A DNA stretch of 64,000 nt from Ascidiella aspersa (taxonomy: Eukaryota), in the NCBI GenBank assembly GCA_963924565.1, contig OZ004609.1:6634001-6698000 (forward strand). Reading direction: 5' to 3'. The position numbers were made by a program, and so were the translations under genes. Positions 16,801-57,075 of this stretch are shown here, piece after piece. Position 1 is the stretch's first letter. The number at the start of each line of letters is the position of its first letter. The notes beneath the pieces are model-generated. The model was not told the DNA's origin and did no database searches. It saw only the letters and a list, made by a program, of their open reading frames with translations.

Positions 16801-19800
16801 AGAGTGATCCAATTATAGATTTTCAAACCATACAAATTTGCCTTGAAAAGTCTTTTGGTATCTTTGGATTGATCAGAAATATAAATGGCAACCCTGTATT
16901 AGAAAATCTTGTTAGTAATAGAAAATTCTGTTGACCAACTATAGTTTGGGAGCCACAGTAATACTATTGGACATCTCTAGAACCAACCAACAAACCGAAA
17001 CAATCCTAAAATTTATATGGGGCAATTATAACATTGCAGACAATGCATACTTGGCGCCGTGCAGTCTCAATGTACACCAGTTGGGAGCCTGGATACCTTT
17101 GGTGGACGCAAACTCGGTCAATGGTTGTATGCAGGTTTAATCGTTGATGTTTGTACAATTATAAGACTGATATTATTTAGATTTACCAGTCGTAATCCAA
17201 GTTAATAATTTTGTAACATGTAAAGATGAATTCATTTCGCCAGAAGGTATGGTCAATCTCTATAGAAGAAATCTAACTTAATTTGCTATAGTAAGACTAC
17301 CAACATTGGTTCTATAAAGCAAGAAAGCGTCCAATTTTATAAATTTTAGGCCATATACCCATCAACTTTAAACTGTCCGCACAAGTTGTTAAATGTAATT
17401 GAAACTTAATTGGACAGTTCGCGTCCGGGGGTCACCGAAAGGGCAAGACAGCCCGGCACACTTGCTGTGCTGGGGGCACTTGGTACGTCGAGCTGGACGA
17501 AGAAACAATGGTCAAGGAACTGGACGTTGACATGGACAAGGATATTGTCACCTGCGAGGTGCCGTACGGCGGCGTGCTGTTTCTCAACAACGCCGTGCCG
17601 CATCAGAGGTAGCCTAGAAGTTCCTAAGTTGGGGCCCGTGTACCCCTTGATAATACTTTAAGGGAAGTTAAAGGGGTTATCAAGACCCAATTCACATTAT
17701 AGTGTATATTTTTAAAAATTTAATGCATTTTACGAAAGTAAATCGAAAGCCATCGCAGACTCACCCAATCTGTCGATCAATAATGCAAGCAGGGCAGAAT
17801 AGAAAAACAACTAGCTTGCAGGTTCGAACTCGCCTCCGGGTATACTGAGCCGTCGCTCTACCAACTGAGCTCGCAGGCTCAGAGAGAAGCTAGTCGAAAA
17901 ACAACCATACGCCAACGCTTGCCACATTCTGTTAGTACAAATCTGCCCTGCTTACAACATTGATCCACAGATTCGGTGAGTCTGCAATGGCTTTTCGGTG
18001 TACTAATGATACGTAGCCGTAATCGTTGGTCAACAAGCAGCTTCAGAAGGACTAGATCACCATGGTCAACACACATGTGTGTGTAGGTTTCATTTTACGA
18101 AAGGTCATAAATCAGTTAAAAACACGGTTTGCCGCTTTCTCCTCGAATGTGTTCAGACTTCATCTATTTCACAATCGTTAGCAAACAACAGTTAAAAAGT
18201 CTACTTCTTGTCGTTTCATGGCGTCATTTCGAAAATTTAATTCCGACCCTGGTCCATGCGAAGCAACATATATTCGATGGCAGATATTCCAAACTAATTG
18301 TTTAGTATGCATAAATTGAGATAAATAACCTAAGTTTATAAAAAGATATTCAGTGAAAACAACTAATGTCATCCCGAGAAAATTTGACTCAATGACTTAA
18401 GTTTAAGTCAAGTCATTAAAAAGACTTTTATAACCACTTAGGATTATGTTTACTTGGGTCAACTCAATGAGTTAAGTCAACACCACACCGACGACCAACA
18501 AAACGTATCCAAAACAAAGGCTTAAATACACAAGTGTAGGCTACCGTACCAGGTCATAAGAAGCGTTCCATTGTGAAACGGGAAACAGTTCAAAACTTTG
18601 TGCCGCAAGATATTCTGTGTGACCTTTACTTTTAATTTAATTTGATAAATAATCATTCGTATAACAAGTTATCATAGAGGCAATTAAAGAGACAACCCGT
18701 TAACCCACAAAGGGGCCCAGCGACCACCACCATTTTCACTGCCATAAAAAGCTTATTTGTTTAAATTTTTTCCAGTTGGTGTTCCTTTGAAGGATGGTGT
18801 ATTTTTGTTTCTTTATTGACGTAAAAAATAGATGTTAAAAATAGTTATATTTATTGGAACCCCAAAATCAGTCGGTTAAAGTTCATTGACTTGTAATAAG
18901 GGTATGTTATAATTGTGTTTTTTTTTTTTTGATTTACTTTAAAACAAGTTTGCCAAGATTTTTTTTTATAATTATTAAAGCGGGTCGCAGGATGGACAGT
19001 TTAGCCCTCGTGTAAAGTGAAAAATTGCATAACACACAATAGGAATAATAAAGCCCATAAGAAGTAGATAGCATTGTTAACGTTCCAAATATATCTTCAT
19101 TTATTATCAACATGGTGAGAAGGCTCTGAATATAAGTTTATGTTGCAGAAGGAAACAAGGAGAAAAAAACTCTGAATAGGTGTAGTTAGTGTACACTGTA
19201 CACTATATACAGCGAGAATAATGTCAGTCGCAACGGGCATATTTTTCGATATGGGCTTGGCAACCTAAATATTTTTTGTGATCTCACTCTCACGTAATTC
19301 CATTTGAAAACGATAACAGACGAATTACACAAAAACAGACGACTTGTATTGTTAATTGGGCCAAACTATTCGTGGCAAATCGTGCCTAATTTTACTGGAC
19401 TGTTTGTTAGTTGATTGATTTGCGATTGATAGTTAAAAGTATGAAAAATATATTTAGGCTTTGTCCTGACCTTGGCTGGTATTATCTAAACTTTATTTAA
19501 AACACAGATTTGTTTCTGATTTATTGCTGACTTTTTGTAGCTTGGAGAATCGATCTGAAATAATTCGCTGGAGCCTTGATTTGAGATGGCAGAGACCCGA
19601 CAAGCCAAACGGTTTTTACGGACTAAAGGAAAACGTCTTGATGAGAACCAGCGCCGAGAAAGATTATAAGATCGATTGGACTGGTATGGCCGGCCTAAAC
19701 CGAAGCGAGATGCAAATGGAAAAAGTGGTCAGTTGCAGTGTTGTAAAAAAGTTATTTTAAAACGACTTAAATCTCAGGCAAGTCATTTGTAAAATATTTA

Positions 19801-28051: not shown

Positions 28052-28170
28052 AACTTGATAATAAATTGCAAAGCCAAAAAGTTGAGTAGATCGACAGCAT
28101 CTTGATTAAGACGTTTCGATACGAGCTTGCATCATGTTCAGTTGATATGATTGCAATTTATTATCAAGCT
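28052..28170 (-). mobile_element. ORF-less Penelope-terminus mini-element with hammerhead remnant
   Basis: Homologous to 8096-8192 (hammerhead box CTGAACA, mutated), closed by an inverted tail ttgcaattttattatcaag. Confidence 0.8.
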
Positions 28171-28528
28171 ACATTACAGATTCGTGCATAGTGTACCCAA
28201 ATTAACAACTTTATGCAGTAAAATCAAATCACCTTGGTTCTTAAGTTCCATACTGGGTTTCCAGCGATATCCGGTCCGATGATTTGCTCCAGTACATTTA
28301 GCAGCTTATTCTCGGACCATAGGTCACGGTACTCTTGTGGTAAAATTCCCAGCTTGTGCATGATCACCGAGGCACCTTTGAACTCTTTCTCCAAGTTAAT
28401 GAGATGTGAGTTGAAGCCTTTGTCTTCATGCTTATCTGCAAATTTTCATTATTTTTTTTAATTATACTTGGTTTAAAATACGTTTTGGGTCAAATTTAAT
28501 ATTTTGCCAACAGAATCTTGCCCTCTAA

Positions 28529-29000
28529 CACAACACAAAGTACACCGAAAAGCCATCGCAGACTCGCCGAATCTGTCGATCTATGATGCAAGCAGTGCAA
28601 GCCAGAAAAACAACTGGCCTGCAGTGAGGTTCAAACTCACGACCTCCGGTCAAAAAAAAAGCCGGGACCGTCGCTCTACCAACTGAGCTATGCAGGTTCA
28701 GAAGGGAACGAGTCGAGAAGCAACCATGCGCCAATACTTGCACATTTTGTTAGTACAAGCAACTTCACACTGGGGGATCATCAGTCCGTATCAATCAATG
28801 AAAGACACACACAAACATTTTTCTGGCTTACTCTGCTTGCATCATAGATCGACAGATTCAGCGAGTCTGCGATGGCTTGTCGGTGTACTATTGATACGGA
28901 AGCCGTAATCGTTGGTCATAAAGCAACTTCCGAGGGGATAGATCACAGATGTTATTAAACACATATGTTTGTGTGTGTCTTTCATTCACAACACAAAGTA
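28529..29000. mobile_element. tRNA-containing non-autonomous retroelement with internal inversion (copy 2)
   Basis: TSD cacaacacaaagta (28529-28542 / 28987-29000); inverted repeats ~28539-28595 / 28833-28889 and ~28797-28818 / 28965-28986. Confidence 0.82.
28615..28697 (-). other. tRNA-derived sequence (Pol III A/B boxes) inside the retroelement; not a functional tRNA gene
   Basis: CCTGCA-TAGCTCAGTTGGTAGAGC-GA-CGGTC..GACCG-GAGGTC-GTGAGTTTGAACCTCAC-TGCAGG-CCA; the anticodon loop is replaced by an oversized T-rich loop. Confidence 0.75.
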
Positions 29001-29092: not shown

Positions 29093-29350
29093 CAGAGGTT
29101 CTCAAACAGTATGTCTATCAAAGACATTAATATTAAATCAATATCAAAAACATTAATATTAAATTTCCATTCGAACTGATTGATTACGACAAAACTGCAG
29201 CAATCTATTATGGTTTCCTGAAAAAATCAACTAAATTAACTGGTTTTAAAATCGTAAGTAAAAATTAGCAAAATTCCTATCACTCGGTGTGTCGCAAGAC
29301 CAACAAACTTTTCCAAATGCATCGCAGAAAATAAAGTTAGAAAACCACTG
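29093..29350. mobile_element. Decayed hAT-like MITE
   Basis: cagaggttctc...aaaaccactg; TSD gtctaaca/ctctaata. Confidence 0.6.
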
Positions 29351-54900: not shown

Positions 54901-56939
54901 TTAATGACGTATTGGAGCTGTATCGACTTCGAATGAAGATAAAATGTGTCAAAATAGATTTTTTTAGGTAAAAATTGTAGCTGAGAATTCTAAAACAATA
55001 AGGATAATTGCGTAACAAATTTTGCACAACATAGAAAGCAAAACAACTTAAAAAAATTGGTTTCATGGTTACATGCCTTCTGAATGCGCCCCTGTAGTAG
55101 ACAAGTAAATTTATTTTACCGAAAACTGCTTCCATTTGTGTTAATCAGTGGTCTTTACATTTTTAATTTCATGTGATGACACCTGACGATTCATGGAATA
55201 CTATAGTGTTCATCGGAACACCAATTAAAATCACTGCATTGGCTAATAATGTTTATCAACTAATGAACGTCCACATTGTGGATTTGAACTTTCGATTAGT
55301 AATTGTACAGTAAGGTTTTCAACTTTTAATTGTTATAAATTGTTTTACGATGTTTGTGGATATTGAGAAGACAAAAATGATCCGCCAGGTTATAAAATTA
55401 ACGACCACTGCTTTCGAATATGTAAAAAAAATTGAAAAATGAATATTTTTACACCTATATAACAACGATAACTTGCTTTGCAGCGCCGTAATATTCATTA
55501 TTACTTCCACATGTCTCTTATTGAAACTTAATGTTTAAAACCCTTGTTCACCCTTTTATATGTTGCGGCCTTTACGTATTACAGTGTAATTTTAAATTTT
55601 TGTAGTCTTTTCAAACAGTATATCTTTCAAATCAATGCCTGTTGAGTTAGTATCATACCTTGGCTGCTAGTTAATAACCTGATTTCAACTGTACAAAGGC
55701 TTTTGAATTTTGTATGGTTGTAAACAATTCTTTTGTAAATCAACTTAAGTCCCAATCAAGTTAAGTCATAATTATAGCAAGTCATTCTCAGGTCAAGTCC
55801 TTGTGATAAAAAGGGAACGTTAAACTACTAAAATTTGTAAACTAACTCAATTACGAGTAATAAAACAACTAAAATTTAACAAAAGACGCAACATATACAA
55901 GCAAATTGGTATATGTAGAAAAATTATGATATATAACCGAATTTTATAAAAAAATTGGTTGAAAACACCTTATAACCCAGGTCGTTTTTCCGAAAGACTT
56001 CAGTCAAGGCACGTTATTTGCCCAAAAGACTTAAGTCAAGGTAAGTCCTTTTTTCCAAATGATGAGGTCAAGTCTAGTTATTTGAAAACAGTGACTTAGG
56101 TCAAGCCATTGACTTAAGGTTTTAAGTCATTGCAACGTTGAAATTTTGGATCACACAGACGAAAACTGTCTTTGAGGCGCAACAATATTCGTTACATTTT
56201 GGTGTCAAGCTTCTGTACTGAAAACACCTATAGCTTGGCGACTGTTATAACAACATGTATTTCGGTGCGGAAATCTCTACTGCAGCCGTAACTTCACGCA
56301 GCCAAAATAAATTTCGATTTCATTACCCACTGACGCACACCCATTGCTGCACCCTTGTAAAAACATGTTTACGTCGCTCTGGCCCTCCCTAACGTTCAGC
56401 TGTGTTGGATCACGGCCACATTGGACTCTTAGGGGAATCGGTATGCTTTGTGGGATGCAGTCCAATCGACAGCTTTTAATTTAGCAGCGCCCTCAGTGTC
56501 GCTTACGTGCCTTACGGCCTGTCTCCTATGAGACACCACAATTGGAATTTACATGCGTCAATCAAAATACAAGTCGATAAAGAGGGTATTTCCAACTTTT
56601 TTTTGGACTACTGTGTCAATCTAGGTTTTAAATAGGGTGCAGTTCGAAACCAGAGCTTTTTGTTTGCTTGACTGTTATCTCGGGTTTATAAAAAGCGTTT
56701 TTCTATTGTTTGTACCAATAATAATGGTATTATTTAAACATTTTTGTATGTTGAATTTTAGCGGTTATTAAAGTAGGACAATTTTGAACGGTGCCAGCAA
56801 CCGACCGTAAGTTGAATGTTTTCTAGCCTGTTGTGATATCCGCAAAAACTATTATTGCTTTTAGTTTTGATAAATGAGTATTCCCTTATACAGTTTAAAT
56901 AAACTGAGGTACGCTATGCACGGACCTGTAATGTTGCCT

Positions 56940-57075
56940 AATAGTGAATTGCAAAGCCAAAAAGTTCGAGTAAATCGACATCATCTTGATTAAGGTATTT
57001 CGATACGAGCTTGTATCATCATAAGTTAACACTAACTACTCGATTTTCTTGGCTTTGCGATTCATTGTGAAGCTA
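56940..57075 (-). mobile_element. ORF-less Penelope-terminus mini-element (decayed hammerhead)
   Basis: Homologous to 8096-8192, followed by the inverted tail ctactcgattttcttggctttgcgattcattg; core mutated (CTTATGA..GAAATACC). Confidence 0.75.

Follow-up and report, generated by a model that had tools for sequence, protein, structure and literature searches.

The insertion at positions 28529-29000 of the window, which is the whole 64,000-nt stretch of Ascidiella aspersa DNA analysed here, raises the question of what kind of mobile element carries a tRNA-like module in its interior, between two inverted arms, and of how such an element is inserted. An earlier note had proposed a circularly permuted, retrozyme-like retroelement built on a closed unit of about 350 nt. 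The positions in the unit given below refer to a genomic 348-nt unit (unit M, L058:28-375) whose origin was placed at the tRNA 5' end and which comprises, in this order, a tRNA-Ala-like module, a run of five T (T5), block A, end-site 1, block B, block C, end-site 2, block D and block E.

The 14-bp target-site duplications described in the earlier note are exact direct repeats (28529-28542, CACAACACAAAGTA, and 28987-29000), and the final four bases of the left one overlap the element end TACT, which constitutes a microhomology. Between them, arm 1 (28543-28818, minus strand, 94-97% BLAST identity to unit M) covers unit positions 228-348 and 2-152 in the block order end of C, D, E, tRNA-like module and A, and its 3' end (unit ~152) abuts the left duplication. 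Arm 2 (28819-28986, plus strand, 97.6% BLAST identity to unit M) covers unit positions 81-249 (A, B, C), passes end-site 1 uninterrupted at 28889/28890 and abuts the right duplication with its 3' end (unit ~249, ...CTTTCATT). This mapping bears out the earlier reading of the two arms as C-D-E-tRNA-A and A-B-C. The arms share an inverted repeat of block A (28539-28610 and 28818-28889; 72 nt, 94% complementary) and an inverted repeat of block C (28797-28818 and 28965-28986; 22 nt, 100% complementary). A tRNA-Ala(GGC)-like module with A and B boxes lies on the minus strand at 28616-28697 (Rfam RF00005, 44.5 bits). The two strands of a stem between blocks B and D are also present, namely the 5' strand in block B (28921-28939, plus strand, aagcaacttc ... 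ggggat) and the 3' strand in block D (28757-28784, minus strand), which includes the motif CTGATGA (TCATCAG on the plus strand, 28778-28784). All the strings that the note had named (those of B and D, CTGATGA and ccgtaatc) occur in this copy.

The window copy is one old, dead insertion, 3-6% diverged from the consensus. Its anticodon loop carries seven extra T, visible as an A-run on the plus strand (28652-28660), and it was missed by ARAGORN because of these extra bases. The loop holds a run of nine T in the tRNA sense versus two in the family, a copy-specific homopolymer expansion, and the seven extra bases are absent from the contigs of three sequencing runs. The element lies, in minus-strand terms, about 95 bp upstream of an exon on the minus strand (28233-28435, with AG and GT borders); given this short distance, its location is probably intronic. 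A 1,284-nt contig of one sequencing run (X4) matches only 28228-28438 (AG/GT borders, minus strand) with ~94% identity, which suggests a paralogue or a related strain. The single-copy depth of this run is about 100 from 348 Mb of data, a value impossible for whole-genome DNA. Because of this depth and of the exon-only contig match, run X4 may be RNA or a transcriptome, though it is not recorded as RNA; more than 10,000 of its contigs of the element family fall on the stretch, and contig depth is no measure of expression. Just downstream of the element, at 29116-29164, two 23-nt direct repeats lie 26 bp apart (TATCAAAGACATTAATATTAAAT). A second, older copy of the same superfamily was found in the window at 17739-18092 (flanks TTTTACGAAAG at 17728-17738 and 18093-18103); it is likewise built of two arms and has both end points, and used as query it has two-arm matches of 75-88% identity across the genome.

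With arm 1 or arm 2 as query, the genome to which the window belongs (308 Mb in 75 contigs) yielded more than 2,000 first-look candidates, many of which are head-to-tail arrays with a period of 346-350 bp. Copies, arrays and two-arm insertions are dispersed over all large contigs. The closed unit predicted by the earlier note does exist as 348-bp arrays of 100% identical units, and the search for head-to-tail tandems that it had recommended yielded perfect arrays of 346-350 bp reaching at least 12 units, the longest being located on contig C1; Tandem Repeats Finder reported 7.5 copies with 100% matches and no indels in the fetched part of this C1 array. Exact words for the tails of blocks A and C, either stopping at the end-site or reading through it, were counted over the whole genome. 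There are 780 occurrences of the A tail, 402 of which continue through site 1, and 577 of the C tail, 238 of which continue through site 2; this leaves about 378 termini at site 1 and about 339 at site 2. The C-D junction is not a peculiarity of the window, since its exact 35-mer is found at 238 places. The element family is abundant, recently active, non-coding and mobile. In seven sequencing runs (X1-X7) bearing six organism labels, 91-100% of the sampled 31-mers of the unit are present; the runs come either from a single species that bears several labels or from very closely related ones in which the unit is nearly identical.

The anatomy of the insertions was surveyed on 33 non-redundant examples from fetched loci, 24 of which lie between duplications of 9-16 bp (12-14 bp in most cases). 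Multi-unit arrays are also enclosed within one duplication, and a whole array was therefore inserted in a single event. The ends adjacent to the duplications are 3' ends in the tRNA sense, and the opposite 5' ends are scattered. The arms end at two positions of the unit only, ~153 and ~250, which are 97 nt apart: site 1 ends fall at unit 147-158 (...GTGTACTA(T)) and site 2 ends at unit 240-258, mostly 247-258 (...CTTTCATT). In the young unit, UUGAUACGGA follows both end-sites, and this motif is only partly retained in older subfamilies. These observations bear on the notion that the element is a foldback or satellite DNA repeat propagated without an RNA step, by recombination or a DNA transposase. 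Tandem arrays and inverted repeats, as such a repeat would have, are indeed present, but arrays and two-arm copies are scattered over all large contigs, each of them is bounded by its own duplication, of 10-16 bp and variable in length, and the ends are of two kinds, fixed and variable, so that this origin is extremely improbable.

The duplication usually has 1-7 bases in common with the element end (TA, TAT, TACT ...), and rare variants at the tip of one arm (e.g. at position 151 in L050 and L032) are missing from the other arm. Both features are expected from priming by microhomology. The 5' ends of young arms are enriched about 2.6-fold around unit 130-168, beside site 1. In older copies, the 5' ends of arm 1 cluster in the D strand (unit 261-319) and those of arm 2 at the 3' boundary of the tRNA-like module (unit 76-142), clusters that presumably reflect stalling of the reverse transcriptase at stable structure. 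Two further loci deserve mention. At L092:1900-2290, a two-arm copy lies about 20 bp or less from the end of a GIY-YIG ORF, with the duplication ACATTGCGTATG, and its centre contains the motif TTGATACGG once more, inverted, which suggests a switch between two copies of this motif. On contig C1, two two-arm insertions with an identical spacing of 258 bp (C1:2372328-2372607 and C1:2380099-2380378) are 7.8 kb apart and probably represent a segmental duplication that carried an insertion along.

A tRNA-derived SINE consists of a 5' tRNA-related head, a body and a 3' tail that matches a LINE or is A-rich. An ordinary SINE of this type, moved by a LINE and inverted by twin priming, would account for the tRNA-like module with its A and B boxes, for the duplications of 10-16 bp and for the 5' truncation. 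However, the tRNA is internal here, none of the examined insertions begins at it, and 5' ends occur all along the unit; the termini (...GTGTACTA and ...CTTTCATT) bear no A-rich or simple-repeat tail, and no LINE with a matching 3' end was seen. Furthermore, T5 stands just after the tRNA, the two ends are fixed, non-identical and always one of each, and perfect multi-unit arrays lie inside single duplications. A SINE origin is therefore very unlikely, and the earlier proposal of a non-autonomous structured-RNA element distinct from a plain SINE starting at the tRNA stands, with the tRNA internal and the B:D stem conserved.

The tRNA-like module and this stem are the conserved parts of the unit. 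Indeed, in the consensus unit the module reaches 54 bits with the Rfam tRNA model and is called tRNA-Ala(GGC) by ARAGORN; it has good A and B boxes and hardly varies between subfamilies whose remaining sequence is only ~80% identical. A canonical tRNA folds as a cloverleaf with a 7-nt anticodon loop, U33 and a purine at position 37. The consensus anticodon loop is CCGGCUU, hence C33 and U37, and the Rfam alignment has one mispaired stem position. Because its loop has neither U33 nor a purine 37, the module is probably, as judged from its sequence, a tRNA-like mimic and not a decoding tRNA. It is directly followed by the conserved T5, which would end transcription by Pol III.

The complementarity of B and D pointed out in the earlier note is real and corresponds to a conserved stem of ~30 bp with compensatory changes. 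In an alignment of 12 sequences (68-100% identical), RNAalifold predicted 35 pairs in this stem; 95.9% of the cells are paired, versus 37-50% with the partners slid, and five pairs are changed on both sides (e.g. A-U in nine sequences and G-C in three). The covariation score is 0.184 versus 0.130 in shuffles, a value reached by none of the 500 shuffles, though the structure had itself been predicted from this set of related sequences. The B-C-D hairpin has a folding energy of -44.3 kcal/mol (z = -4.8) and end-site 2 is predicted to lie within its apical part. The circular fold suggested by the note gave a rod-like structure for the whole unit (MFE -125.5 kcal/mol; folding z = -3.4).

The ribozyme implied by a retrozyme-like candidate fared differently. 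A hammerhead has the core CUGAUGA ... GAAA ... UH, around which three helices nest. The Rfam scan proposed earlier (cmscan, E<=10) covered the window copy and four tandem units and returned tRNA and noise only, with no ribozyme, and the whole window gave no hammerhead at E<=1. The hammerhead pieced together in the note from CTGATGA and ccgtaatc fails, as the partners of helix I (ccgtaatc) and helix II (gggg) are interleaved and cannot nest. When the unit was read for GAAA after the candidate helix II partner and for a cleavage triplet, neither was present. Moreover, in older subfamilies (full units 76-86% identical) CTGATGA is replaced by CTGGCGA, CTGTAGA, CTGTGGA or CTGTTGA; on these sequence grounds, its presence in the young lineage is fortuitous. 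Two weaker resemblances were also rejected, as alignments scored against shuffles stayed at chance level (z<=2.3): that of unit 150-186 to a decayed local Penelope hammerhead (CTATTGA-TACGG..CCGTA-..GTTGGTC), and that of block A or its end to the tail of local mini-Penelope insertions (shared ACAGATTCG and GTGTAC).

According to Craig et al. 2021 (PMC8557442), insertions of Penelope-like elements are marked by strong 5' truncation, by partial tandems and by a directly adjoining 5'-truncated copy in inverted orientation. They may bear a 'tail' of 30-40 bp, often at one end only, and most Penelope clades carry a hammerhead, Naiads being without it (PMC8557442). The tRNA-bearing element displays the same combination of 5' truncation, head-to-tail partial or multicopy tandems and an adjacent inverted 5'-truncated arm that forms inverted repeats; its ends are always unlike (unit ~153 versus ~250), which amounts to the one-sided extension typical of Penelope insertions. 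The architecture of the insertions thus passes every structural test for Penelope-type integration, and the variable 5' truncation and the duplications of 10-16 bp agree with target-primed reverse transcription of the Penelope type. Penelope-type reverse transcriptase and GIY-YIG ORFs are encoded in the genome; the local Penelope machinery to which the note had ascribed the mobilisation is represented in the window by a relic only. Three mini-Penelope foldback insertions with duplications of 10-12 bp (window 28056-28199, window 56905-57075 and L079:85-284) provide a local comparison: in all three, one arm ends ...TTATCA(A) and the other extends by ~33 nt, in a templated sequence that is homologous between copies (...CATTACAG..GTGCA.AG.GTACC). 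Like these 113-nt foldbacks, the tRNA-bearing element has two outward-facing arms, short duplications and one extended arm. It differs from them in lacking their hammerhead-like core (GATAC..GTATC-GAAAC-GTC) and in the length of the extension, 97 (or 251) nt versus ~33 nt, and there is no detectable sequence similarity. Indeed, local alignments of the unit with the Penelope relic of the window, the mini-Penelope arms and the tails (one local family) revealed no significant similarity.

Two loci were considered as possible autonomous partners and set aside. The first, L091, has a Penelope reverse transcriptase and GIY-YIG ORF and a canonical hammerhead, with no similarity to the unit; at the second, L092, the unit is merely inserted beside a Penelope ORF, with its own duplication. 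The ORF of L091 is open over 453 aa and belongs to a family different from the window relic, and a minimal canonical hammerhead (CTGATGA-AGCAC..GTGC-GAAAGC) lies on the minus strand at L091:1250-1330, ~170 nt downstream of the ORF stop.

The two-arm insertions follow a strict rule. About 19 young and about 15 old ones were found, and in the fetched loci all of them are heterotypic, in that their two arms stop at different sites, ~153 and ~250 (the ~19 young copies, including the window and L092 copies, plus the older ones that could be scored). A second count was based on the coordinates of stopping and read-through tails in the first 35.4 Mb of contig C1, pairing outward-facing termini within 4 kb. 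All 14 pairs are heterotypic, eight in one order and six in the other, and none is homotypic, an outcome with a probability of about 6e-5 under independent choice for the C1 pairs alone, a few of which may duplicate insertions counted in the fetched loci. Single-arm arrays that end at either site also occur, with duplications, which shows that neither site needs the other to initiate synthesis; in insertions primed from both DNA ends, the same site is never used twice.

The two arms of an insertion are, furthermore, clonal. One array variant of 346 nt lacks AT in ACACATATG and another of 350 nt has two extra A; in both arrays, the indel present throughout the units of one arm recurs in the opposite, inverted arm, and the 346-nt variant is present at a second locus (L025). 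Each insertion was therefore copied from one template lineage, and the variants are heritable through transposition. This clonality rests on the two private indels, private substitutions being mostly uninformative, as young copies contain few variants and the variants of old copies are subfamily-wide. It agrees equally well with a circular monomer, with a homogeneous multimer and with a monomer that is copied over and over through template jumping.

Taken together, these data make it probable that the element is a non-coding, non-autonomous retroelement in which the closed 348-nt unit serves as template and is inserted in the Penelope style by a reverse transcriptase supplied in trans. In the proposed mechanism, a reverse transcriptase/endonuclease acting in trans, by the architecture of the insertions most likely a Penelope-like reverse transcriptase with a GIY-YIG nuclease, would nick the two target strands ~13 bp apart. 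Over 1-7 bases, each freed DNA 3' end would then anneal to either of two short RNA sites, ...GUGUACUAU (unit ~147-158) and ...CUUUCAUU (unit ~247-258), and the paired ends, one per site, would prime cDNA synthesis. Synthesis would proceed 5'-ward over a variable distance, often for several rounds of the unit, which would give perfect head-to-tail arrays, and the two cDNAs would be joined at the centre. For the window insertion, arm 1 would have been copied over 274 nt and arm 2 over 168 nt, so that block A (the 72-nt inverted repeat) and block C (22 nt) would have been copied twice. The identity of the enzyme, the transcription of the template and its form (circle, linear multimer or monomer with jumping) are what we infer here. 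Points that weigh against this reading are the chance-level similarity of the unit to the local Penelope sequences compared, the absence of the canonical hammerhead that most Penelope clades have, the T5 that would halt Pol III and the incomplete retention of UUGAUACGGA in older subfamilies. A template consisting of a tRNA-flanked spacer released by RNase P/Z was considered and rejected, as arm 1 always runs through the tRNA.

The form of the template is where a retrozyme analogue enters the discussion, in which the unit would be released from multimeric transcripts at an undescribed self-cleaving or host-processed site located at one or both end-sites, ligated into a 348-nt circle and copied by rolling-circle reverse transcription. 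Such an analogue would agree with the closed unit, the perfect arrays and the clonality of units and arms, with the use of each end-site just once per insertion, which a template holding single copies of both would predict, with the rod-like fold of the whole unit and with the enrichment of young 5' ends beside site 1. Three low-depth runs also assemble a self-closed contig of the unit (378 nt, i.e. 348 + k-1), but such a contig is equally produced by tandem DNA. No known ribozyme family matches at E<=10, and linear multimers, or a monomer with end-to-end template jumping, would give the same genomic products; the local mini-Penelope has the same asymmetry, and there too the genomic data require no circle. 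We consider this analogue unlikely. A more explicit version, a hammerhead-less counterpart of the retrozymes, seems quite unlikely as well: a 348-nt RNA containing a tRNA-like domain and the conserved rod would be cut at the twin sites before UUGAUACGGA, by an undescribed self-cleaving fold or a host nuclease, then circularised and copied by rolling circle, the Penelope-type enzyme starting internally in two hairpin loops. Telomerase, a relative of the Penelope-type enzyme, uses an internal template. If this version were true, the one-of-each rule would report a single monomeric circle per integration complex.

Among known elements, the closest resemblance in organisation is offered by the SINE-like retroposons Sm-alpha and Sj-alpha of schistosomes, units of ~330 nt that are tRNA-like, both tandem and dispersed, present in very high copy number and provided with an active hammerhead (PMC2770079). 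The element of the window shares with them a short non-coding unit, a tRNA-like Pol III module that is detected by tRNA finders, and the coexistence of a tandem 'satellite' form and dispersed copies. In contrast, an active hammerhead is found in every Sm-alpha unit and none in the tRNA-bearing element, and the tRNA-like part is Ala(GGC)-like in the latter and Gln-like in Sm-alpha. Animal non-LTR retrozymes carry a type I hammerhead, form circular RNA and have been proposed to be Penelope passengers (Cervera & de la Pena 2020, PMC7229834; Li et al. 2026 preprint). With its 348-bp arrays and its duplications of 10-16 bp, the tRNA-bearing element falls within their range of tandem units of 170-400 nt and of duplications longer than 4 bp. 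Unlike them, it has no type I hammerhead per unit, and it is known here from genomic sequence, whereas circular RNA was demonstrated for retrozymes. A term search of the 2026 preprint on vertebrate retrozymes found no mention of a tRNA-like module, and in Cervera & de la Pena 2020 (PMC7229834) 'tRNA' appears only for tRNA ligases and processing.

The non-autonomous Penelope derivatives (MRC1, or non-autonomous Chlamys) are similar in their head-to-tail multicopy organisation, 5' truncation, inverted arm and one-end tail, and the absence of a hammerhead is shared with the Naiad Penelope-like elements (PMC8557442). Unlike the present element, for which no such similarity was found in the one local family compared, these derivatives share their 3' ends with an autonomous family, and none is described as having a tRNA-like module or two end-sites 97 nt apart. 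The element is accordingly a tRNA-bearing, hammerhead-less, Penelope-style non-autonomous element and not a retrozyme, a class to which it was not assigned because it has no hammerhead.

In summary, this family shows that what is conserved in such a passenger can be a tRNA-like module and a rod instead of a hammerhead, which bears on the role of the hammerhead in retrozymes and Penelope elements. For studying how Penelope elements build their unusual tandem and inverted insertions, an in vitro system has been called for (PMC8557442). The coupling of one end of each kind and the clonality of the arms imply that the two DNA ends do not choose templates or sites independently. The 97-nt distance between the end-sites allows both primings of a single integration to be distinguished from each other, and this young, abundant family, with roughly 700 scorable termini, constitutes a natural marker experiment for Penelope-style integration.
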